Positions 27,548 through 64,000 of a stretch of 64,000 nucleotides of DNA are shown in pieces. The translations under genes and the position numbers were made by a program. Position 1 is the stretch's first letter; every line of letters begins with the position of its first letter. Source of the DNA: Klebsormidium nitens (lineage: Eukaryota > Plantae > Klebsormidiophyceae); assembly GCA_000708835.1 (NCBI GenBank), contig DF237089.1:62001-126000 (forward strand). Direction: 5' to 3'. The notes beneath the pieces were generated by a model that saw only the letters and a list, made by a program, of their open reading frames with translations, did no database searches and was not told the DNA's origin.

Positions 27548-30500
27548 TTAACGCCTAGCTAAAATAGCTGCTGTATGCTGGAAACCGCATGCAATCTGTA
27601 CTACTCGAACTTCCGGATCTTCTAAGGCGCCCAGCTTTACTTGAGTTGGTACCAAGTAGTCAAAGTCGTTGCCGAGGCCCTGTACTCGGATGAAAACAAG
27701 ATCAGGACTTCGACCAAAGAGGTGATATATGTTCAGTTTGCGCAACAGCCATTTCTTTGTGGCAGATCGCGGCTGAGTCGCAAAATGTACATAAGATCCG
27801 ACGCTTTGCCATCCCGTCGCGACGAACTTGAGTTTTTGGTTGTCGAATCAGCCCCCCTTAAGCCAGCCCCTAGTCCTGATTTACCAATTTCGAGCTCACC
27901 AGATACTCGCGGCTCATCTGCATTTCAAGTCTCCGAGCATACAGTCTCTCGAATACTTCTGCTTTCCAACCTTCCAGAGCAAGTAGCGTCCCATGCCACC
28001 AGTGACTCAACGGCGGCAGTCGTTTCAGCCAGCGCCGCCTATTCTTCAGACCGGGAGCTCGACTTCGTGACAGACGAGCTTTCGCGAAAGATGAGTGTCT
28101 TGTTTCCNNNNNNNNNNNNNNNNNNNNNNNNNNNNNNNNNNNNNNNNNNNNNNNNNNNNNNNNNNNNNNNNNNNNNNNNNNNNNNNNNNNNNNNNNNNNN
28201 NNNNNNNNNNNNNNNNNNNNNNNNNNNNNNNNNNNNNNNNNNNNNNNNNNNNNNNNNNNNNNNNNNNNNNNNNNNNNNNNNNNNNNNNNNNNNNNNNNNN
28301 NNNNNNNNNNNNNNNNNNNNNNNNNNNNNNNNNNNNNNNNNNNNNNNNNNNNNNNNNNNNNNNNNNNNNNNNNNNNNNNNNNNNNNNNNNNNNNNNNNNN
28401 NNNNNNNNNNNNNNNNNNNNNNNNNNNNNNNNNNNNNNNNNNNNNNNNNNNNNNNNNNNNNNNNNNNNNNNNNNNNNNNNNNNNNNNNNNNNNNNNNNNN
28501 NNNNNNNNNNNNNNNNNNNNNNNNNNNNNNNNNNNNNNNNNNNNNNNNNNNNNNNNNNNNNNNNNNNNNNNNNNNNNNNNNNNNNNNNNNNNNNNNNNNN
28601 NNNNNNNNNNNNNNNNNNNNNNNNNNNNNNNNNNNNNNNNNNNNNNNNNNNNNNNNNNNNNNNNNNNNNNNNNNNNNNNNNNNNNNNNNNNNNNNNNNNN
28701 NNNNNNNNNNNNNNNNNNNNNNNNNNNNNNNNNNNNNNNNNNNNNNNNNNNNNNNNNNNNNNNNNNNNNNNNNNNNNNNNNNNNNNNNNNNNNNNNNNNN
28801 NNNNNNNNNNNNNNNNNNNNNNNNNNNNNNNNNNNNNNNNNNNNNNNNNNNNNNNNNNNNNNNNNNNNNNNNNNNNNNNNNNNNNNNNNNNNNNNNNNNN
28901 NNNNNNNNNNNNNNNNNNNNNNNNNNNNNNNNNNNNNNNNNNNNNNNNNNNNNNNNNNNNNNNNNNNNNNNNNNNNNNNNNCCCCCCACCCCCAGGTGAA
29001 GAGAAGCCCCCCCTCGGTGCGCGCCGCGGTGTGCTTCCAGCCGCACGCGACCTGCGCCACGCTGTGCAACTGAAGCGCATCCACGCGCGCGGGCTCGCGG
29101 CTGAACGCGTGCATCTCCTCGCTGCAGGAAGGGACGGCACGTGTGGGTGCGTCACACGGCATGCCAAGCAGTACGTCATCATGACATCCCGAGTTTCGCA
29201 GATGGTTTGCGAGCACTTCTGTAATGAAGAGCGGCGATTGCGCAGTTGTTTTTGAAAATCTTGCCGCTTTGCTGGAGACACTCATGGGTGAATAATGCTC
29301 TTCTTGAGAGCACGACCAATCGGTCGAAGTCATTTGCACAAGTGCCTGTTGACGGGTTGGGCGATTGGATAGGCAGCACAACCGTCTGAAGGGTGCACAG
29401 CAATATAAGGAGCTACCTGTCCCGATTCGTCGTGCACAGCGATCCCCACACGATGGCTGCTGTCTTCTCAAAGTCAATACGATGACTTTGAAAGGCCGGA
29501 GACTTGTGGTCTCCAAAGGCGAACTAAGACGGAGCAAACGGAGACTGCGGGGCAGCCCTTACCCGAGCCCCAGGCAGCCCTCCTGGTTAGCCCCCCACAC
29601 GAACACATCCCCGTTGCCTGCAGAGAACTCACAAATGTGAGGTAAATACCACAATCCACGAATCGCTACGATCCGCCCAATGATGCAGCAGAGTCTGCGG
29701 CGAAAAACCTACGAACAGTGCCGGAATACTGGCAAAACTTTGATCATTGCAACAGACCAGAGAACGTATAATGCAGGGCTTTTCCCCTTCAGTCGGCACA
29801 GTCAGTAACTTGTAGCCTTCATGAAGAGGGCCGGCTCCCTGCTGGTGGTGATGAATGCGGGTTAGTGTCTGTTGCCTTCCACTTGACAACCCATCAAATC
29901 ATTGATTTAGTGCTTGCGGCTAGATGTGACTGTACCAAAATCGTACACGCTGTAAGTGCCCAAACGCCCCGCAGAAGATGCCAAGCTTGCGAAAACATGC
30001 AAACCGAGAAACAGATCAATCGGCGTGTGAGGAGCTCACTGCTGACAGCGGCGGTGTGCGCGCCACCGCCGGCGACCCCCGCCGTTCGGAAAACGACCGG
30101 AACGGCGGCTGGAATGTGCACGTCCTGTTCGAAGCCCGTGCCCTGCACCAAGACCAAAGAGCGGCTCAGCCAGAAAGCCCACTGGGCCAAAATTACATCC
30201 GCATTTGCGGATTGATCTGAGGAACAGCTGGGTTGTGAGGGACCTGAAGCTACGATGCTAGCGAGCAAGAGTCCTAAAGCAGCCTCCTGGTGATCGAAGC
30301 GTGCAGACCAGCAAAGGTCCGCAAGTGCCGGCTATCCGATGGCAATTCGCGTGATACTAGATCAGCTGTCTGAGAAAGAGAGCCTCTGATCCAAAGCAAT
30401 TACTGGCCATATTTTGAAGCTTCAAATGCTGTGAATTCGGGGCCAATGCTATCTGGCAGAGAATGGACTTTTTCCAACCGAGCTTTGCGAAGCAGGAGTG

Positions 30501-53652: not shown

Positions 53653-56600
53653 CTAGCGCGCATGAGATGCGTGGGCATCAAACACGAACCCCTCCGCCTC
53701 TTCAACCGCAACGATTCTGTCGTCGGAAATTTCCGCCTTCTCGTCTTCCGGCTCCTCAAACGACACGCGTCTCTGCCGACCGCTCACCCTCCGGACATAA
53801 TTCCCCCCCGGGGGCAAAGAATGATTCAGCCGCTTCCAAACCGAGTCCATCGATTCGGTAGTTTCACCCGGTTTGTTTCGGGGCGATCCTTCCTCGGGAC
53901 TCGGATTTACGCCCGGCGGATGCCCAACCGCAAAATGGACAGTCCGCGACCTTCCTAAATCGCCGCTGGTTCGTTCCAGTAATCCGGCCACGTCGCTCGT
54001 CCCCCGGGCGAGCCCCCGGGCGGGTCTTTCCCCCGGGAGCAGTTCCGCAGAGCTTCGCAAGCTTTTCAGCAGCCCCGACGCCTCGCTCTGCGCGCGCGCG
54101 GGCCCGCCGCGCGCGACCGACGACACGCTGCTCATCAGGAACGCCGACGCGCCCAGCTGTTTCGGGGGGGCACTGAGCGCGGTCTGGATGCCCCCCGGAC
54201 GGAGTGAGCGGCCAAAAGCCCCGGCCGAGACGTCATTTTCGGCCCGGAGCATGGGGGAGTTCATCGGGGTGAGGGGCATCAACCCCTGCTTGCGCAGCCG
54301 GATGCGGGTCACAATCCCCCGAGCATGGGCCTGGGGAAAACAAGGTTAGGGGTAAGTTTACGTGAAACGAAGCTCCGAATTTCGAAACCGCAGCGGAATA
54401 AGCGGGTTTGTGGTTGTTCTAGTCTGCAAATTTTGGGTCTTGAAAGCTCGCAGGTGAGCTCGTTTTCAATCAATGGGCCCTTTTCTCTTTGATGTCGGTG
54501 CATACACGTGTTGTCGACAACGGGAGGGGTTGAGAAAGGCCGAATTATTCCTAGGCTCTCCTATTTGAACCCATCAGCCTTCATTTCGTGATTAAAACAA
54601 ACTTAAACGGGCAATTTGTGAGATTCCGAGTGGGTCGGACGCAACTCATGAAGACTTCACGATGATGTAAGTGCCGACTGACGTCAGCCCTCAAACATCG
54701 TCTCAAGTCCGGCCCTCACCTATAGGTCTCGATTTCATGTTGACTAGGCGTACGTTGACTAAATGAAAGCCCCCTATGGACGGGTAGGGCCTGGGGGTTA
54801 GGGTGGGTACGGGTGCGGAGCGGGTGTCATTTATCGGTTTAGGTTTTTAGGTTTGTTCGTTCCCCGAGCACTATCCTTAGTCAACATGCGCTTGGTCAAC
54901 ATGAAATCGAGAAGTATCCCTCACCTGGATGGTCATGGCCGCAATGGCCTTGGAGACGGACATGGTCTTCATGATCTTGGCCGGGTCATGGTTCTTCTTC
55001 TTCTCCAGCGCCTGCAGCCTTTTGGGCAGCGCGTTGAAGAACTTGCGCCGTGGGGACTGCAGCTTGTTGTGCAACAGACGGCGCAGACGCTTCTCCGCTT
55101 GGTACTGCACAGGGGAAGCACATACGCATGTTTTGAAGGCTCTTACAACCAATCCCATCCACTTGCAAGCAGGCGTATCGACTTCGCTTGATCAGAGGAA
55201 AATCCTTCAGTCTAACGAGACATCGGAATTTATCAAAGCGGGAACCGTAAAAGGCCGCTGCACCTCTGTGAATCTTAAGGAATCTGATGGACATTCGAGA
55301 GCGTGTGGAAAGTAGATAAAGAGAAAACAGCGCTTCGTCCAAGAGATGACTCGCTTTGAGTCGGCTCAACTTAACGACTTGAACGCCTTCTATGAAACCG
55401 AAGCACTTTCTAATATCTCTCACCCGGTATCTAAGTAGGTGGTTATCGACTTTCGCACTGGTGGAGAACGAAAAAGGGGTGCACTCACGTTCTTACAGAA
55501 ATTAAAAACTGCCAGAAAGATGTTCGTGGAATCAGAAGCCAAGCAACGGTGCAGTGACTGGTCCGCAAGAAATAGTTGGCAACACCAAGGGCGCCACATC
55601 TGCGCTGTGATCTGTTCCCCGCCCGCTCACCTCGCACCACTGCGTGTTGAAAATGCTGGCCCCCAGCCTCTTGCTGTTCGCCGCCACAAACGCGATCGTC
55701 ACCAGCGAATGCAGCACCAGATCGTACGGCACCCCGCGGCTGAAGATGGGAATGTTCATTTTGCTCGCGAGCGGCAGGACCGCGCTCGGGCTCGGGCGCA
55801 GCGCGTTCTCGTCCGCGCGTTTCACCCCGAGGGGTTCCCCCAGGTCCGTCAGCAGCAGGTACAACTGCTCGGGGGTGATCCAACCGGTCGCGGTCGGGTC
55901 GTGCCGCGTCCACACCGCGTCGAACTTGCGGAGGACCACAGTGTTCACCACCCGGGAGTCCTGCGGGCGTCGGCCGAAACAAAGCTGGATCCCAAAAAGT
56001 GCCGATCTCGCAACAGCGCGGCGAAACGGTTAAAAGTGGATTATCTGGTTCATCTGGTTCACCTGTGTTTTCCTGAAACGTTCTCTCTCGTGCAAAAACG
56101 GCTAGTATTAGACAGCAAGATGATCACCAAAGATTGTGCGATTGGTCTGAACACTCTTCGCTCAGATGTGGATATTTCTTATACGACAGATATTTCCGGA
56201 AAAGGTTTTGCCAGGGACATGTAGCACAAGGCACGAACCTTGACCGCCAATCTGGCGCCAGACAACGACGATGCACGTCGAATAGACAGCGGGTTTGAAC
56301 AGAGTGAGGGAAACAAGGAAACGGGTCGCGATCCGCGCGCGCGCACCTCGTCCTCGACCTCGCTGAAGGCCTCGATGATGATGGCGATCACTAGGTTGAG
56401 CAGCACGAACTGGCCCAGCACCACGAACGTCACGAAGAACGGCACGGCCAGCCACGTGACGACCATGCAGTCGTGCATGATGAAGTTCCAGTTCTCGCCC
56501 GTCAGCATCTTGAACATCACCAGCAGGCTGTACGGGAACGTCGTGAAGTTGATGAGTGACGTCATGGACTCCAGCGGCCCGTCGGGCGGCACGTGGCCGA

Positions 56601-59600
56601 AGAGCGCAACGCCGAAGATGGCGAAGATGTACAGCTGGAGCAGGAGCAGGCTGCCGACGGAGTACAGGTTGGGCAGCGCGGACACCAGCGACTTGAGCAG
56701 CTTGTTCAACCCGTGGTGCGTCCTGCGCAGGGGGAATACAAGACGCTTTTCAGGACTGGGTTGTCAGAATTGAGCTTTCAAGGTCGAGTTTCAGGATCGA
56801 TTTTCAGGACTAGGTTTGCAGATGGCTATTCAGGATTGAGTTCCAGGCTTGGGTTCTCAGGATTGCGTTTCCAGGGGTGGGTTTTCAAAAGCTTGAGCAG
56901 GTGGTCGGACTCTGTGGCCTTTTCTTGAGGTTCTTAGGTCTCTTGAGGTTCTTAGGTCGCTTTCTGGCCTGGGGAAGCGGCGAAGGAGTGAAAGAGGGCA
57001 GAGAGCAAAGAATCACTTGCAGAGGAAGCTCGGGTCTGAGTCCAATTGTTGTTGTGATTATACGGTCAGCTTTGAAGCCACCAAGTGTGTGTCATTCATA
57101 TCTCTAATTTGATCCGTTTGCGTTAAAAGGAACACCTGCAAACAGTCTGCTTTTGCTTTGATCGGTCAAGGCGTCAAGCCTTTCGGGGTCGAGCCACTCG
57201 GCAATCCTTCAAGATGCTACTGATAAAAGGTTTCCAGCAATTCAAATGACAGCGGCGGCAGTAGTAAATGCGGGAACATCAATAGGCAGAATTCCAGAGG
57301 GTTCACAGCGCCCGTGCCGGTTTGAAATTTTGCACAAATTGAATCGTCTCGCGGCGGCTTGCCTGGCCAGCTTGAGCATTCTGAGCACCCGGAAGCACCG
57401 CACGAGCGGCGCGCCCGGCCGCGCGCCCATGGCCTCCCCGGTGAAGGTCATGACTAGAATCACCAGGTCAAATAAGTTCCACCGGTGCTGGAAAAACTGG
57501 CGGACGCCCAACCCGAGCAGTTTCGCGGCGACCTCCGCCGAGAACACCCCCGCGAAGATCCAGCCGGAGTACCGCGCGAGCGCGCGCGTGCGCGCGCCGG
57601 GGGGCACCTCTTGCGTGCACAGGATGACCAGGTTCAGCGCAATCGCGGCCGCGAACGCGCGGTCGAAGTACGGGTGCTGGACCAGGTTGAAGAAGGACGC
57701 GCGCAGCGCGCGCGCGGGGGAGCGCTTCGCGGGCGGGCGCAGCGCGGCGTGCGAGCGCATTTTCTCGATGGCCTTTTGGGTCTCGACCCACTCTTGCTGC
57801 ATGGGGGTGAGGCCCTCGATCTCTTTGTCCTTCTTAATGTTGCCGAAGCTCTCGATGACGATACCTGCGTAGGAAGGGGCTCCAGAGATCAGGAAGCTGG
57901 GCTGACGGTGGCAAGCTGCAAAGATGGTAACGGGAAGACAGATACTCCTGCGTTGTGAGCGCTTGCCTGTACCACCAGACCCATGATTGGCAAAGCGGAA
58001 ACATTTCTTGGGCGGGGAAAGATCCAAAAAAACGTCACCACAGCCACATAACAGCTGTGCTTGACATAAGCGTAATAAAAGCAAACGATTCGGGGTCGTA
58101 GTTGACTCTGAAGCAACCATTCTAAGTTCCGTTCTGCATACGAAGCGTTGTAAAGATATCCGATTGGGCTGCGTCCGCTCACCTACGAAGAGGTTGATGA
58201 GGAAGAGCGAGCCGATGGCGATGAATGCGATAAAGAAGAGCGACGCGTAGGGCCGGTAGTTGAGGATCGGCGCGTGGTCGATGGCCACGCTGTCCATTCC
58301 CGGGTACATCAGGTAGTTGGCATTCTCCGTCGTGCTCAGCTCGAAAAGAGTCAAAGCAGAAGCGCCCAGGTTGTCAAACGTGTAGGGCACCGAATTGACC
58401 CACCTGGATCCGAGCAACGGGGAAATCAACGTTCAACCAATTTCGACTTGTCAGCTTTAGAGCTTTGTGAGTCTGTTTGCACGGATCTGGAGGGAAGTCG
58501 GATCAGCTTCTCGAAAGGAACAGGGATTGGATCTCGATCACTCGGAACAAACATCTGATGAGGACAATGAGACGGTTTTCAAAAGCCTTTAGTCATCATA
58601 AGGCAGGAGTTGGTAAGAAGAACAAGGTATCAATGGCTTACACGCTAAGATCAACACGGTGGCAACGCTTACACGCCCAAGCATATAGGAAACTGACAAT
58701 CAAGATGACCGGCATGAAAACAGTCGGGATCTTCAGATGTTCTTTGAAAAGCTGAGAGCGACCCTGTCGAGATCACGACGCGAGATTGAATGATTGAGAG
58801 GCACTCAAAATCTGGTGTGACGTCAGCGGGCTTACTCGCGCGTTTTATTGTACGCGTCCACGCCCGCGCAGTCCGCGCGCAGTTGGACGTCCGGGTCGGT
58901 GCACATGGAAAAGGCGCCGCCGAAGATCTGGACCCCCAGCGTGGCGAACACCAAAAAGATGACGGCGCCAATCATTACCACGCTCGTGCTCGCGCGGAAC
59001 GCGCCCAGCAGGGCCGCGGCCACCATCTGCAGCCACGTGGAGAACCTTATCAGCCGAGGGGCGGCTTAACTGATCACCATAGCACTGCGAGACTGGAAAC
59101 GCGAGGAGCTGAAGCCGTCGTTGAGGTAATTAGAAGCGGCTTGATACTAAGGAGAGGTTGCGGACCGCGAGAAAGACAGGAGAAGCTCCACAGGATTCAT
59201 TCACCAGTACAGGCCTCATTGGAGCTGCCTCAATCTTTCTTGATCTTAACTGATATCTGAAGCTTCATTACTGTGCTTGCAAAACCTCCGACTTGCCAGG
59301 AGACAATGCTTGCAAACTATCCTTGCGTTTCATATTGCAAGGATATGTCTTTCGAGGACCCATGAGGGCCCCTCAGAGCTGAGGATTCCAGGTCCTCTTC
59401 AACAATTGAAACTTGCCCGGTGACCTCTTCTTCGGCGACCACTCACCCTGAGCCCCGGGGCGGTCTGCGCCAGCCTCAGCGCCCGGAAGACTCGGAAGAC
59501 GTGCAGCAGCGGCCACCGGTTCTTCGCCGCGACGCTGATGAGAGTGGTCAACGTACAAAGCGCGTCCAGAACGTTCCAGGGATCCCTCAGATACGCACCC

Positions 59601-62600
59601 GGCTCAAAGAGGACGCCCAACTGCAATTTCAGCGAGGGCTTCAGAGCGGAGGATGGAGCGATTGGTAAACTCAAGCCTGGAGTGCAAATGGTCACCCTAG
59701 GAAAGGCCTTAAGAGGAGGGCAAAATTGAATCCCTAGTAAGACCGAGATGGACCTCTGAGTAGCAGCCAAACTAGGTATCTACCACCGATTGTAGCGTGA
59801 TCTACCGTGAAGCTAGCAGCAGACATAAGAGGACCGGAAGCAAAGCAAAACTTGGAGAAGCCGTCTGCACTGCAGGCTTCCGAGTGAAAGCTTTTTCGAA
59901 GACTAGATGAATGCTCCCTTTTCCTATCATATCCGCTTTCAAAGACCTAACCTTATACCTCAGCGCAGCGCCTCAGCCGTTCCTCGATTGAAAATCAATG
60001 CTGTGAGTTGCAGATCGATCTGAAGGATCCGGGGCCTCTATTTTGATGAAGCATTTGGCAGCTTGCCCCTAAAACTACCAAGAACGACCCGCCTCACCGC
60101 CGTCATCTTGAGCAGCACCTCGGTCGTGAAAAGCGCCGCAAACACAGCGTCCATCAGAACGATCGCCCTCCACTCGCGGCCGCCCTCGCGCATGGTCGGC
60201 CGGTCAGCCATCAGGATGAAAGTGCTCACAACCACGACAGCTGGCACCAGCCTCGTGAACCGCTTATCTACAATGAGCTGGTGAATCTTTATCCGGAGGG
60301 GGTGCTGGTCCTTGAGTAGGAAGAAGGCTTTGCTCGACCCCCTGCGGAGAGGGCCCTTCTCCCTGCCACGTGTCGCCTTTCTGGCCAGGATCGTGATGGG
60401 GTCCGAGCGCAGGTGTAAAGAAGGGATGTGGGCGAACGACAGGTGGCGCGCGAGCGACGGTTTCTTCAGCGGCCGCTGATCGATCAGACGGATCAGACTC
60501 TTCCACTGCACTTTCGGTTTCATGAGAGCGGTGATGCTCAGCCTCCGAGTCAGCCTCCGCTTCTCCGTCGCCTTTGTGTGGCCTCCCTTCGCCGGGCGGA
60601 GCATGATGTGCGGCGAAGACGCGCTCCGCTGCAGCGCGCGCGCGCCCTTCCCGTCGGCTGACGTCACCTTCGCTCCCGGCATGTGCAGTCGGGGCAGGTT
60701 GGGAACCGGCAATATTTCCATTTTTGACACTTCGCCTGACGGGGGCGGTGACACCACCTTCTGAAAGGAAACAGTGTTAAGTCCCGCTACGAACCGAGCC
60801 GTCCGCTGCTTCCGTCCCCGAAGGCCCCTCGGAACGGCGGAACTGGGGGGATCCTCGGGAAGATCTCCCGAGCCCGATGATGACGCGGGCTCGTCTGATT
60901 GCGGCGTCACCCGAGAGGAGTTGGGGAAACTTTCGGCGTCCAGGTCAAGGGCGCTGTCAGACTGCCCCGTCAAAAGAGACGACGCAGCACGGGGGGAGAG
61001 CGAGTCGACCCCGTTTTGCCCCTCGGTTGAAAACCCGGGCCCCCCCTTTCGCCCCTTCAAGCGGCTCCCCGCTCGCCACGTGGCGCTGAGGTCCATGGGC
61101 TTCGCCAGGTCGATGCCCAGCTTGGCGCACGCGGCGAGCGCGGCCGCCGATGACGACGTCATGCCTTCCTGCGATGACGTCATCCTTGACTTGCGCCGCT
61201 CGTGGCCGGCCGCGAGCTGCGGCAAAGCGTTCGCGAGCGCGCTCTTGTCTTCCGGCCGGAACCGCGTGTGATTTCCTTTCCGCTCGCTTTTACCTTCTTT
61301 TATGATTCTAGCCAAGTCCCCCGGGTCAAACCGGGCGCTGGCTTGGGGGCTGATGGGAGGGGTGGCGGCCAGAGAATTCAGTCCGGTGTTTAGGGGGGTG
61401 CTTCCGGCGGAATCGAACACTTCAGGGTCGATGGGGAGGCCACGGAGCGAAGCCGACAACGGGAACGCTAGCTGCATCTCATTCTTGACTTTTGATTTCG
61501 CGTCTTTAGCCGCTGCTGACGTCGGACTTGGGGGCTCGGGTGGCGAAAGAAGGTCACGAGCCGCGTCAGCCGCGGCCGGCTTGTGCGCGCTCTGGTCGCG
61601 GATGCGCCGCAGAAACGCGCGCGGAGACAACATGGTCGCGAGGGTTTTGGGGGAGATCGGCTCGCTCACGTCGGCGCTCTTGCCGCGGAGGAGGTTGTTA
61701 GTGGAGCGCATCTTGTGCGCGCGCGCGCGAAAGCGCGCCATCTTCTGCTTGAGGGCCATGCCTGCGGGGTGACATTAGGGTAGTCGGATGAGAAACGATA
61801 AGGTAGCTTTGAGAAAAGGTCAAGGAGTTGCTTGCGACTCAACTATGTTGACGTTGACTTCTCCCTTTAAGTGAGTGAGCTATGAGCCTCTTGTACAAAC
61901 TGAGACCATACGCTTTTCGTTACATTACAGAACGTGAAGGCGACGACTAAGAAGGCACGGGTTATGTGAGCTGCTTTTGTGCTTATACAAGACGAGTTTT
62001 GTGGTCAGCTTTTTAGGAGTCCTGTCTACGGCACTCATCGCGTGACCTTTCCTGTTTCCTGCAGCCAATAACCAGGAGCTTTACCAAACAGTAGGGTTAT
62101 GAGTATCTGACGGTGCGACTACGGATCGCTCTGAAAACTCCCCTGTAAAAAGCCATACTTTCGGGTAGATTGTCCCCAATTCCCTCATCATCAACCATCT
62201 GAGACAGGTTCCTGCGATGCGACATGACGTCATCCTTCAATTTAAAGCCAGCCCATGTTGAAATATTGTGCGGGCGCGCTTACCCGCGGAGAGAAACTTC
62301 TTCCGAAGCTCTCCGCTGAGGAGCTGCTCCCGCTGGGTGTTCTCCTCGAACGACTCGATAAGAATGGCCAGCAGCAGGTTCAGCAGGATCGTTCCGCCGG
62401 CCACGTGTACGAAGATGACGTAGGGCGCCGCCCACCAGCCGATGCCGCGGACCGCGGACGCAAGCACGTCGTTCCAGTTGTAGTTTGCAATCACCTGACA
62501 CGTCGAGCTTTCTAAGCTTTGAGTGCGTGGCCAGTTGTTTTAGCAGACGCTATCTTGAATCACAATGGTTTTGACTTTGTCATGGATCAGTCACGGAGCC

Positions 62601-64000
62601 CTGCTTTCTGACGAAAGGCCCGAACATGGTCTTTACGTGACACCCAAACCCACGGTATTGCAAATGGCAGTAGTTTTCAGATCCGAGCATAATGAAGCAA
62701 ACATGTCGTCTGCTCGGCAGACTCGTATATGTTGATGAGCATAAGACAACTCGTTAGACTGTTTCTCATGGGAAAGAAGGGCAGATTTCTCTGCTTATTT
62801 GCTAACCGAAGAAAGTAAATGGTACACAAATGTAATCCGACAGCTTGTTGGCAAATCGCGGTCATCACCTGGAAGGTGGTAAGGCATGCCCAGAAGAAGT
62901 TGTCGTAATTGGAGCGCGGCTCGCCGTCCGGGAAGCTGAGCTTGCCCGCCAGGATCTGCATCCCCAGCAGCGCGCTAACTAGGATGAAGAGCAGCAGCAG
63001 GAACGCGAACGGGCGCACCGCGCGCAGCGCGCTGAAGACGGACGACAGGAAGATGGCCAGCGACGGCCACTGGCCCGCCAGCTGGAAGACCCGCAAAACG
63101 CGGAACGTGCGCATGGACGCCACGTTGTGGATGACGCGGCCGCTCGTGCCGAAGTCGACGAGCGCCATGACGAACATCGCGCCGTCGAAGGCGGTGAACG
63201 GGTCGCGGCAGAAGGGCACCGGGCCGTGCGCGAGCGCGCGCAGGCTGGTCTCCAGCAGGAACACGATCGTGCACGCCTGCGGGGGAGAGCTTTCTCTTTT
63301 GGTTTGTCATATTGAAAAGAACGGCGTTTCTAAGACAGAAGTCGTGAGCTTCCAGTTCCGGCGTTTTACCCGCTCTGCTCAGAGCAGGTGATTAGAGAGT
63401 GCGGTTGTCTAAAGATCATCTCTTCCGAAAGCTGGTCCGAGCGGCAGAGCCTGAGTTCGCCAAGTCCGGAGACAGAAGAACGCAAAAGGAGCAGCTGAAA
63501 GGCCCAATGGCCTGCTCGGGTGAAAGACTGAATGAGCAAAATTCAGCGGATTTGAGGGAATGTAAATTCGTTGCGATCAAAGCAGGACGTTGAGCACTCA
63601 CGAGGTCAACTCCGTTGATCGCGCTTCGCAGCTTGCGCGGCGCGCCCTCGTAGCGCAGCGCGAGCACCAGCAGATTGAAAACCACCACCAGAATGAAGCC
63701 GATGTCGACTCGCGGCCGCGCTAACGTCACCCGCAAATCCCTCCGCATTCTCCGCCACTTTCTCCGCACCAAGAACAGCCGGTGCCGGATCCGATGCTTC
63801 CACGACACTCGCTCCTCGATTGTTTCGGTCTCCTCTAGTTCGTCCGTTTGCCGGAAGTGGGAGGAGTAGGAGGGGGTCCCGGGAGCAAGTTGGTCGTGCG
63901 CGTTTGCAATCGACTTCGACGACAAGGACTTTTGGCTAGACTTTCGAAAGCGCTGTCGAAAGCTGTCGAAGGCCTGCTTGGGCGAGCGCAGCGCGTTCCA
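53653..64000 (-). CDS. Four-domain voltage-gated cation channel alpha subunit (Nav/Cav/NALCN superfamily), domains II-IV and C-tail; 5' part off the right edge
   Basis: Exons 64000-63602, 63276-62869, 62494-62284, 61761-60098, 59620-59447, 59026-58836, 58403-58183, 57864-57363, 56722-56347, 55960-55631, 55104-54925 and 54330-53653 join in frame. They give three 6TM repeats with S4 helices (MRTFRVLRVF, HVFRVFRALR, VRCFRVLRMLK), pore loops, S6 ends (LLNLLLAILIESF, LINLFVGIVIESF, LLNLVIAIIIEAF), an EF-hand-like WTRHDPTATGWI, and the IQ motif AAMTIQ|AHARGIVTR. Confidence 0.95.
54782..54824 (+). other. Potential G-quadruplex-forming tract in a channel intron
   Basis: GGGTAGGGCCTGGGGGTTAGGGTGGGTACGGGTGCGGAGCGGG contains seven runs of three or more G. 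Confidence 0.4.
56750..56958. repeat. Degenerate 13-14 bp minisatellite (about TTTCAGGAYTGRG x10) plus a perfect 18-bp tandem duplication
   Basis: Units such as TTTCAGGACTGGG, TTTCAGGATCGAT, TTTCAGGACTAGG, TTCAGGATTGAG and TCTCAGGATTGCG between 56750 and about 56890. TCTTGAGGTTCTTAGGTC occurs twice at 56923-56958. Confidence 0.65.

Follow-up and report, generated by a model that had tools for sequence, protein, structure and literature searches.

A constrained four-repeat cation channel gene in Klebsormidium nitens with tyrosine at the domain II filter site and alanine at the domain III pore tryptophan

The selectivity of four-domain channels has been explained almost wholly from rings of Asp, Glu, Lys and Ala (EEEE, EEDD, DEKA, DEEA and EEKE). 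In a recent classification the ring site is Asp or Glu, or Lys in animal Nav1 and NALCN channels (PMC10120453). High-voltage-activated (HVA) Cav1/Cav2 channels have EEEE, rarely EDEE, together with an Asp at the domain II +1 position; this Asp is described in every Cav3 channel but a cnidarian isoform, a Cav3 channel in which it is neutralized becomes sodium-conducting as a sodium channel, and Nav2 channels (DEEA) are nonselective for Na+ and Ca2+ (PMC10120453). Cav3 (T-type) channels combine EEDD with the domain II +1 Asp, Nav1 channels have DEKA (some lineages carry the Lys in domain II instead of domain III), and NALCN and Cch1 have EEKE, EKEE or EEEE with an Asp at the domain IV +1 position. 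Among protists, rings of A/G/K/E and S/S/K/E have been described in oomycetes and D/D/K/D in a cryptophyte, from a data set that contains no streptophyte alga (Pozdnyakov et al. 2018). Beyond the ring itself, replacing the +2 pore Trp of domain IV in Nav1.4 (W1531A) lowers selectivity, while Phe or Tyr there keep it (Tsushima et al. 1997, PMC2219431). No relevant publication on four-domain channels of Klebsormidium or streptophyte algae emerged from a literature search. Land plants are not known to have four-domain channels, and Klebsormidium, as an algal relative of land plants, is of further interest for the roles of such channels there.

Here we describe a gene, intact, spliced, transcribed and under purifying selection, whose product is a voltage-gated cation channel with four repeats that belongs to the Cav/Nav superfamily; it lies in a 64,000-nucleotide stretch of K. 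nitens DNA (the window; contig DF237089.1, positions 62,001 to 126,000). Repeats II, III and IV lie within the window (Table 1); repeat I lies beyond position 64000 and is known from related loci (L002, L003 and L010).

Table 1. Features of the channel gene, in window positions; borders 62284/61761, 57363/56722 and 56347/55960 are inferred, without read support.
Feature	Positions	Strand	Content	Evidence
Exon Ea	63602..64000	-	End of I–II linker, domain II S1 and start of S2; extends past window edge	Frame open from 64000; 64-82% identity with relatives
Exon Eb	62869..63276	-	Domain II S2-S5 and first pore helix; terminates ...T-T-F-Q	Both junctions in contigs; Pfam Ion_trans E=5e-23, profile positions 46-183
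Intron	62495..62868	-	374 nt, GT..AG, phase 0; domain II junction doubted by the initial annotation	
Exon Ec	62284..62494	-	Domain II filter V-I-A-N-Y-N-W and S6	Ion_trans profile positions 189-241; 3' end inferred from GTAAGC donor
Domain II Tyr codon	62482-62480	-	TAC	Read directly
Exon Ed	60098..61761	-	Long, poorly conserved II–III linker and domain III S1-S2; within ORF 60038-61759	Mostly contig-covered; 5' end inferred; ~50% identity to one relative, numerous indels
Exon Ee	59447..59620	-	Domain III S3-S4	Both junctions in contigs; Ion_trans match
Exon Ef	58836..59026	-	Domain III S5 and turret	Both junctions in contigs; Ion_trans match
Exon Eg	58183..58403	-	Domain III pore loop S-T-T-E-N-A-N and S6	Contig-covered
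Domain III Glu codon	58327-58325	-	GAG	Read directly
Domain III Ala codon	58321-58319	-	GCC	Read directly
Exon Eh	57363..57864	-	III–IV linker and domain IV S1-S4	Ion_trans match; 3' end inferred, GC donor
Exon Ei	56347..56722	-	Domain IV S4–S5 linker, S5, pore loop T-G-E-N-W, S6	Ion_trans E=1e-25; best solved match Cav3.2, E=2.6e-35; borders inferred from AG and GT sites
Domain IV Glu codon	56496-56494	-	GAG	Read directly
C-terminal exon start	55535..55960	-	GPHH / EF-hand-like region	Weak Pfam GPHH match (E=1.5e-5, 25.3 bits, slightly below the 26.8 cut-off); 78-95% identity in relatives

Filter residues and family placement

All exon pieces of the channel gene match Pfam Ion_trans, and the S4 segments carry Arg or Lys at every third position (RTFRVLRVFQ in domain II, HVFRVFRALR in domain III and RCFRVLRMLKLAR in domain IV). 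Cav3 is the best solved match at all three pore exons (E = 1e-11, 3e-26 and 3e-35 for domains II, III and IV) and outscores Cav1, Nav and NALCN at each; NALCN matches domain IV more weakly than Cav3, Cav1 and Nav do, falls below Cav3 in domain II and has no match in domain III. The alignments to Cav3 are gap-free, and the domain III post-filter loop MY.G.D.V..D..P..N..P is common to both. Cav3 channels also have a helix-loop-helix gating brake, and no beta-subunit AID, in the I–II linker, which in the alga lies mostly beyond the window.

Pore columns were assigned by HMM alignment of all S5–P–S6 modules together with alignments to solved structures. Across the modules, N-Y-N-W falls on G-E-N-W and T-T-E-N-A on T-x-E-x-W; the Tyr pairs without gaps with the domain II Glu of Cav3.1, and in equally gap-free alignments to domain III of Cav3.1, Cav3.2 and Cav3.3 the Ala pairs with Trp and the Glu with Asp. 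The initial annotation of the locus had placed a Tyr at the domain II filter position, a retained Glu and a Trp-to-Ala change in domain III, and a canonical TGENW in domain IV; these alignments and the codons themselves agree with it at every position that it gave. The pattern T/S-x-[E/D/K/A]-x-W is present in domain IV and in domain I of relatives (SLEGW), while domain II reads ANYNW, without the acid, and domain III TTENA, without the Trp. In domain II the neighbours of the ring residue have changed as well (TGE to ANY), the +1 residue is Asn and not Asp, and the Trp is kept. With the domain I Glu supplied by relatives, the ring is E/Y/E/E in sequences with ANYNW and E/P/E/E in a group with TGPNW.

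This combination differs from each family compared. The EEEE or EDEE ring and domain II +1 Asp of HVA channels are lacking; Cav3 has EEDD and the +1 Asp, whereas the alga's channel has Glu in domains III and IV, Tyr in domain II, a +1 Asn and Ala for the domain III Trp; there is no ring Lys as in Nav1; and relative to NALCN/Cch1 the domain IV +1 residue is Asn and Lys is again absent. The Nav2/DSC1-type DEEA ring likewise has three acids, one neutral residue and no Lys, but its neutral residue is an Ala in domain IV and not a Tyr or Pro in domain II, its domain II filter is one residue shorter, a shortening that the alga's channel lacks, and the sequences are not close. The protist clades of Pozdnyakov et al. 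(2018) are also lineage-specific with rings that depart from EEEE, yet through Lys, Arg, His or small residues, and their text mentions neither a Tyr nor a Pro ring. Nav1.4 W1531A makes the same +2 change from Trp to Ala, but as an engineered mutation in domain IV of a DEKA channel, whereas the alga's replacement is natural, in domain III and fixed across the whole lineage.

Among the 150 nearest representative channels, no repeat has Tyr at the filter position or Ala at the pore Trp, and an E/Y/E/E-type ring is listed in neither of two published filter surveys (Pozdnyakov et al. 2018; PMC10120453). The annotation's reading of a ring unlike those of Cav, Nav and NALCN is supported, and no earlier description of this filter from a known algal clade emerged. 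With Tyr or Pro at the ring site and Ala at a near-invariant Trp, in a gene under constraint as set out below, the channel falls outside the current classification.

Relatives and selection

The same gene is found at at least five related loci from other samples. ANYNW is read in three sequences (the window, L003 and L004) and TGPNW at four loci (L001/L002, L005, L006 and L010), and every locus that reaches other repeats keeps TTENA in domain III, TGENW in domain IV and SLEGW in domain I. Among the SLEGW relatives is one with 95-98% identity in most exons and 82% in the linker exon. Since the sister lineage has Pro, the conserved trait is the missing acid in domain II combined with Ala in place of the domain III Trp, and not the Tyr itself.

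Over about 717 codons, omega is 0.081 against L003 (dS 0.25) and 0.22 against L002 (dS 0.61). Constraint is tightest on the pore exons: omega within the ANY group is 0.02-0.08 for them, and 0.019 for that of domain II. Within A-N-Y, the codons for Ala and Asn vary synonymously among the three ANY sequences (GCA/GCG/GCC and AAC/AAT), which indicates that the new filter state is itself maintained. Three of the six amino-acid differences between the ANY and TGP groups in the domain II pore exon are the filter residues (P=4e-4 for three specified filter sites, in a test chosen after seeing the data).

The gene is part of a small lineage that is confined to close relatives of the source alga. An exhaustive search of representatives with the domain IV exon returned one close cluster (P0001, 86% identity), beyond which matches are at most about 46% identical in that exon, so the search supplied no outgroup with the ancestral domain II state. 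More distant orthologues were absent from a first JGI metagenome scan, and a second gave chance 9-residue matches only (L007-L009). The nearest full-length relatives are scattered protists (Fabomonas, Micromonas) and metagenome proteins, at about 30-45% identity per exon.

Permeation of the predicted pore

We infer that the protein still works as a voltage-gated pore from the S4 arginines, S6 asparagines, pore helices and three glutamates that it has kept; its permeation probably differs from that of every channel characterised so far. Our preferred reading, to which we give a probability of roughly 60%, is a functional channel with an E/Y/E/E ring that would be Ca2+-permeable yet poorly selective, or Na+/K+-permeable, and not classically Ca2+-selective. 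The ring would present three carboxylates without an acidic +1 'beacon' residue, and the filter wall of domains II and III would be loosened; Ca2+ binding would then be weaker than in EEEE and monovalent cations could pass. Nav2's nonselectivity is the behaviour predicted here for the alga's channel, and Nav1.4 W1531A and Cav3 with a neutralized domain II +1 Asp are precedents for such a shift. In which direction selectivity would move is conjecture.

The two unusual sites may be connected. In NavAb-type structures a hydrogen bond joins a repeat's pore Trp to the filter Thr of a neighbour; once domain III had lost its Trp, the domain II filter may thus have been released from constraint. We tentatively suggest that a streptophyte-algal lineage with a working channel, Tyr or Pro in domain II and no domain III Trp could represent an independent natural route away from Ca2+ selectivity, unlike the lysine route of Nav1 and NALCN. 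The Y and P variants may differ in permeation and reflect adaptive tuning. The two already exist as natural variants with which the roles of the domain II acid and the domain III Trp could be probed, and the reading, if true, would offer a natural test of the asymmetry that a four-domain filter tolerates.

Alternatively, the channel could still be essentially Ca2+-selective, with three Glu, backbone carbonyls and the Tyr hydroxyl sufficing and the odd residues nearly neutral. Three of the four ring glutamates, the pore scaffold and the domain II Trp are indeed kept, and the natural three-acid DEEA rings of Nav2, although nonselective, still pass Ca2+ (PMC10120453). We nevertheless regard this as unlikely, given that the domain II +1 Asp, described as the key Ca2+-selectivity residue (PMC10120453), is here Asn and no other repeat supplies a +1 Asp, that the domain III Trp is lost and a W-to-A change at +2 lowered Nav1.4 selectivity (PMC2219431), and that the Pro of the sister lineage offers no oxygen.

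It is improbable, in our judgement, that the central pore is non-conducting and that the protein is kept as a voltage sensor or scaffold, or conducts by a different path. Tyr against Pro is a radical change between sister lineages whose surroundings are fixed and could mean that the position no longer matters, as in a non-conducting pore; a near-invariant structural Trp is missing, and expression is low or conditional. Against this, all relatives keep three ring Glu, the Asn residues of S6 and, in domains I and IV, T-x-E-x-W, which should drift in a dead pore; A-N-Y persists despite synonymous change, and selection is strongest on the pore exons.

Transcript support and the domain II junction

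Five GT..AG junctions of the gene are present in transcript contigs of runs X1-X4, all from one study and at low contig depth (about 3-6); in twenty further runs with the same species label almost none of the stretch is present. Junction 63602->63276 (Ea to Eb) occurs in contigs of three runs and 60098->59620 is also seen, while a contig's loose end at 58181 runs on into ATCGTCATCGAG, which is exon Eh. Contigs over 58181-58401 show no differences, so S-T-T-E-N-A-N is transcribed as encoded.

Junction 62869->62494 had been predicted by the initial annotation as one to be verified in RNA, and contigs of X1, X2 and X4 are spliced exactly there, giving F-Q-V-I-A-N-Y-N-W. An 8-base ambiguity (CAGGTGAT on both sides) leaves the product unchanged either way. 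The stretches on either side of the junction together make up the whole length of each contig, so no letters lie inside it, and the five residues that bridge Ion_trans profile positions 183 and 189 leave domain II without a gap. Four related loci have an intron at the same place, of 237-731 nt.

A gene-model or RNA-processing artefact, in which TGE-x-W in domain II is restored by RNA editing, by a minor isoform or by an exon that escaped notice, would have some room in that contigs drop rare variants. We consider it very improbable: three runs agree on one junction, without added letters or base differences, none of the three introns that surround the domain II exons contains a pore-like reading frame, the domain II pore exon matches nowhere else in the domain II region of the window, and the same exon structure with a non-acidic domain II residue is common to five related loci. 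A hidden micro-exon or alternative pore exon is ruled out by the contig sums, these three introns and the single copy of the exon in the domain II region, and retention of the intron, giving F-Q-V-M-T, yields a frame that runs 63 codons to a stop without E-x-W. The annotation had cautioned that V-M-T at the start of this intron mimics a canonical filter; spliced contigs skip the intron, and in relatives its start reads VTA, VGS, VRF or VRS, so that the mimic, absent from them, is chance.

Lastly, a decaying pseudogene, to which the loss of two hallmark pore residues might point, is scarcely credible and had already been disfavoured by the initial annotation: no frame is interrupted, spliced RNA is present, and omega of 0.08-0.22 indicates a channel gene that selection maintains.

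An expressed channel gene and its domain II junction

A multi-exon channel gene on the minus strand runs past the edge of the window. It encodes a voltage-gated cation channel of the four-repeat type; repeats II, III and IV are contained in the window, and repeat I is predicted to lie past position 64000. Every exon-sized open frame of the gene matches Pfam Ion_trans, and a weak GPHH match (Pfam) lies downstream of repeat IV. The S4 charge ladders are intact in repeats II–IV, and conservation extends to the pore helices, the Asn residues of S6 and three glutamates of the ring (the four selectivity-filter residues of domains I to IV, in that order). Three exon borders are predicted. GCAAGC (minus strand, 57362-57361) is the sole in-frame donor joining the domain IV S4 (…KLA-R) to the next exon (THHGLNKLL), which predicts a GC-AG intron at this point. 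Elsewhere in the window, a low-GC island in the composition profile is only apparent, because it coincides with an assembly gap of 874 N.

Transcript contigs from four public runs of one study under the same species label, aligned to 58050-64000, skip five stretches, each bounded by GT..AG on the minus strand, and are thus assemblies of spliced RNA. At the domain II junction, the minus strand reads ...ACC TTC CAG / GTGATGACC... at 62869/62868 and ...GTCAG / GTG ATT GCA AAC TAC AAC TGG... at 62495/62494. The joint from 62869 to 62494 occurs in contigs of three runs, ambiguous by 8 bases (CAGGTGAT on both sides) with the encoded product unchanged; in each contig the two sides add up exactly to the full length, and therefore no micro-exon lies between them. 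The mRNA thus encodes F-Q-V-I-A-N-Y-N-W, as the initial annotation had read it, and the hidden micro-exon that might have restored an acidic filter residue is absent from these contigs. No pore-like frame was found in the three introns flanking the domain II exons, the frame of a retained intron meets a stop after 63 codons, and the domain II pore exon occurs just once in the domain II region of the window, its only other real match in the window being the domain IV pore exon. Contigs cover 58181-58401 with zero differences, so the domain III loop S-T-T-E-N-A-N is transcribed as encoded. The positions first assigned to the domain II Tyr, the domain III Glu and Ala and the domain IV Glu (loop TGENW) were all correct, the Tyr codon being read directly on the minus strand.

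This transcript evidence comes from a single study at low contig depth, and 20 further runs filed under this species label yielded next to none of the channel stretch; among nine studies listed under the label, it is the only one with transcripts of the gene. In all four runs, the match of some contigs to the gene is confined to two short segments. These contigs have depths of 15–50, against 3–6 elsewhere in the gene, and run on into 152–255 loose letters, neither 30-mer of which occurs in the window with up to three mismatches allowed. They may be chimeric, or may derive from other transcripts, more highly expressed, that share a brief near-identical stretch.

Coordinates of the channel gene and associated features in the window
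Feature	Position	Strand	Remark
Channel gene	at least 55535-64000	-	continues past window edge
Intron	63601-63277	-	skipped in contigs
Intron	62868-62495	-	skipped in contigs, 3 runs
Intron	60097-59621	-	skipped in contigs
Intron	59446-59027	-	skipped in contigs
Intron	58835-58404	-	skipped in contigs
Intron	57362-56723	-	predicted, GC-AG
Domain II filter Tyr	62482-62480	-
Domain III filter Glu	58327-58325	-
Domain III Ala (pore Trp position)	58321-58319	-
Domain IV filter Glu	56496-56494	-
Segments matched by deep contigs	62914-63024; 60627-60835
Assembly gap	28108-28981

Placement of the filter and its relatives

Three independent alignments agree on the placement of the filter. The Pfam profile leaves the domain II exon ending in T-T-F-Q at position 183 and enters the filter exon at 189 with five residues between, so that no gap falls across the junction. 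In an HMM derived from S5-P-S6 modules (150 related channels), N-Y-N-W aligns with G-E-N-W and T-T-E-N-A with T-x-E-x-W, and TGENW matches itself. Against solved Cav3 channels, N-Y-N-W-N-D-V-L pairs gap-free with Q-E-D-W-N-K-V-L of Cav3.1 domain II; in domain III, S-T-T-E-N-A-N pairs gap-free with A-S-K-D-G-W-V of Cav3.3 and correspondingly in Cav3.1 and Cav3.2. Tyr therefore occupies the filter position, as originally proposed.

A search with the domain IV exon returned one close cluster, the fragment P0001 (86% identical); all other matches reach at most about 46% identity in this exon and 30–45% per exon overall. Genomic loci of relatives from other samples, obtained via P0001 and word searches, split into two groups.

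Loci of relatives
Group	Loci	Identity to window	Domain II loop
A	L003 (Logan SRR23617307), L004 (SRR23617210)	94-99% in most exons, 82% in linker exon	V-I-A-N-Y-N-W
B	L001/L002, L010 (two contigs, JGI sample 3300060285), L005/L006 (SRR14092358/60)	64-91%	V-I-T-G-P-N-W

In group B the filter residue is Pro, and the canonical Thr-Gly before it is retained. Domain III is S-T-T-E-N-A-N and domain IV is T-G-E-N-W at every locus reaching the relevant exons, and both groups share the Trp-to-Ala change of domain III; domain I reads S-L-E-G-W in L002, L003 and L010. Together these loops make the ring E/Y/E/E for group A and E/P/E/E for group B; the window's own domain I Glu is taken by proxy from L003. 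At the position following the ring residue (+1), repeats II, III and IV carry Asn, and repeat I, as read in the relatives, carries Gly. The intron after F-Q has an identical position in all relatives, with lengths of 237–731 nt and unrelated sequences. In JGI sample 3300060285, contigs Ga0590115_0002003 and Ga0590115_0000381 (66 kb and 160 kb; L002 and L010) each hold a complete TGPNW channel gene, and the two copies differ slightly. The pair may stem from a recent duplication, or from the presence of two strains or haplotypes in the sample.

Rarity and maintenance of the filter

The domain IV exon search that returned P0001 was run exhaustively with phmmer against 1.84 billion cluster representatives and produced 5544 matches; every pore loop in the best 150 was inspected. 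Glu or Asp fills the filter column in the large majority of these loops; Ser, Ala, Gly or Thr turn up occasionally, and Tyr is absent from every repeat; the Trp two residues after the ring (+2) is substituted in just nine loops (eight Tyr or Phe, one Met) and never by Ala. The 2023 classification gives the ring site as Asp or Glu, with Lys in animal Nav1 and NALCN (PMC10120453). Pozdnyakov et al. surveyed 277 four-domain channels and described odd rings, including those containing Lys, Arg or His; neither a Tyr nor a Pro ring appears in the text of that survey, which is without streptophyte algae.

Seven gap-free exon alignments, totalling about 717 codons and summed exon by exon, gave Nei–Gojobori dN/dS estimates of 0.081 between the window and L003 (dS 0.25) and 0.22 between the window and L002/L001 (dS 0.61). 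The gene is expressed and constrained, bearing out the view that it is not a pseudogene. Within group A, the domain II pore exon has a dN/dS of 0.019, and the A-N-Y codons vary synonymously across three sequences (GCA/GCG/GCC, AAC/AAT and TAC), which indicates that the new residues themselves are maintained. Between groups A and B, the 68-residue domain II pore exon shows six amino-acid differences, half of which are the filter residues, and these required at least five nonsynonymous changes (P = 4e-4 for three specified filter sites, in a test picked after the data were seen). This concentration, together with the maintenance, argues that the repeat II filter underwent at least one round of remodelling while the remainder of the pore stayed frozen, and was kept thereafter.

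Predicted permeation and known families

In NavAb-type structures, a hydrogen bond connects the +2 Trp with the filter Thr of an adjacent repeat. If the domain II Thr partners the domain III Trp in this channel, loss of that Trp could have freed the domain II filter to change. In Nav1.4, replacing the domain IV +2 Trp with Ala reduced selectivity, while Phe or Tyr at this site retained it (PMC2219431).

Ca2+ selectivity has been linked to the domain II +1 Asp, and a Cav3 channel with that Asp neutralized becomes a sodium channel (PMC10120453). With only three predicted ring carboxylates and no +1 Asp 'beacon' in any repeat (repeat I judged from relatives), this channel should bind Ca2+ less tightly than EEEE or EEDD channels do, and should let monovalent cations through. 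Among solved families, Cav3 comes nearest to each of the three pore exons, but its EEDD ring and domain II +1 Asp are both missing here, so the channel is not a Cav3 member; nor does its ring match those defining Cav1/2, Nav1 or NALCN, in keeping with the first impression of a filter foreign to these families. By predicted behaviour, the nearest functional analogue would be Nav2, whose DEEA ring likewise has three acids and which is nonselective for Na+ and Ca2+ (PMC10120453).
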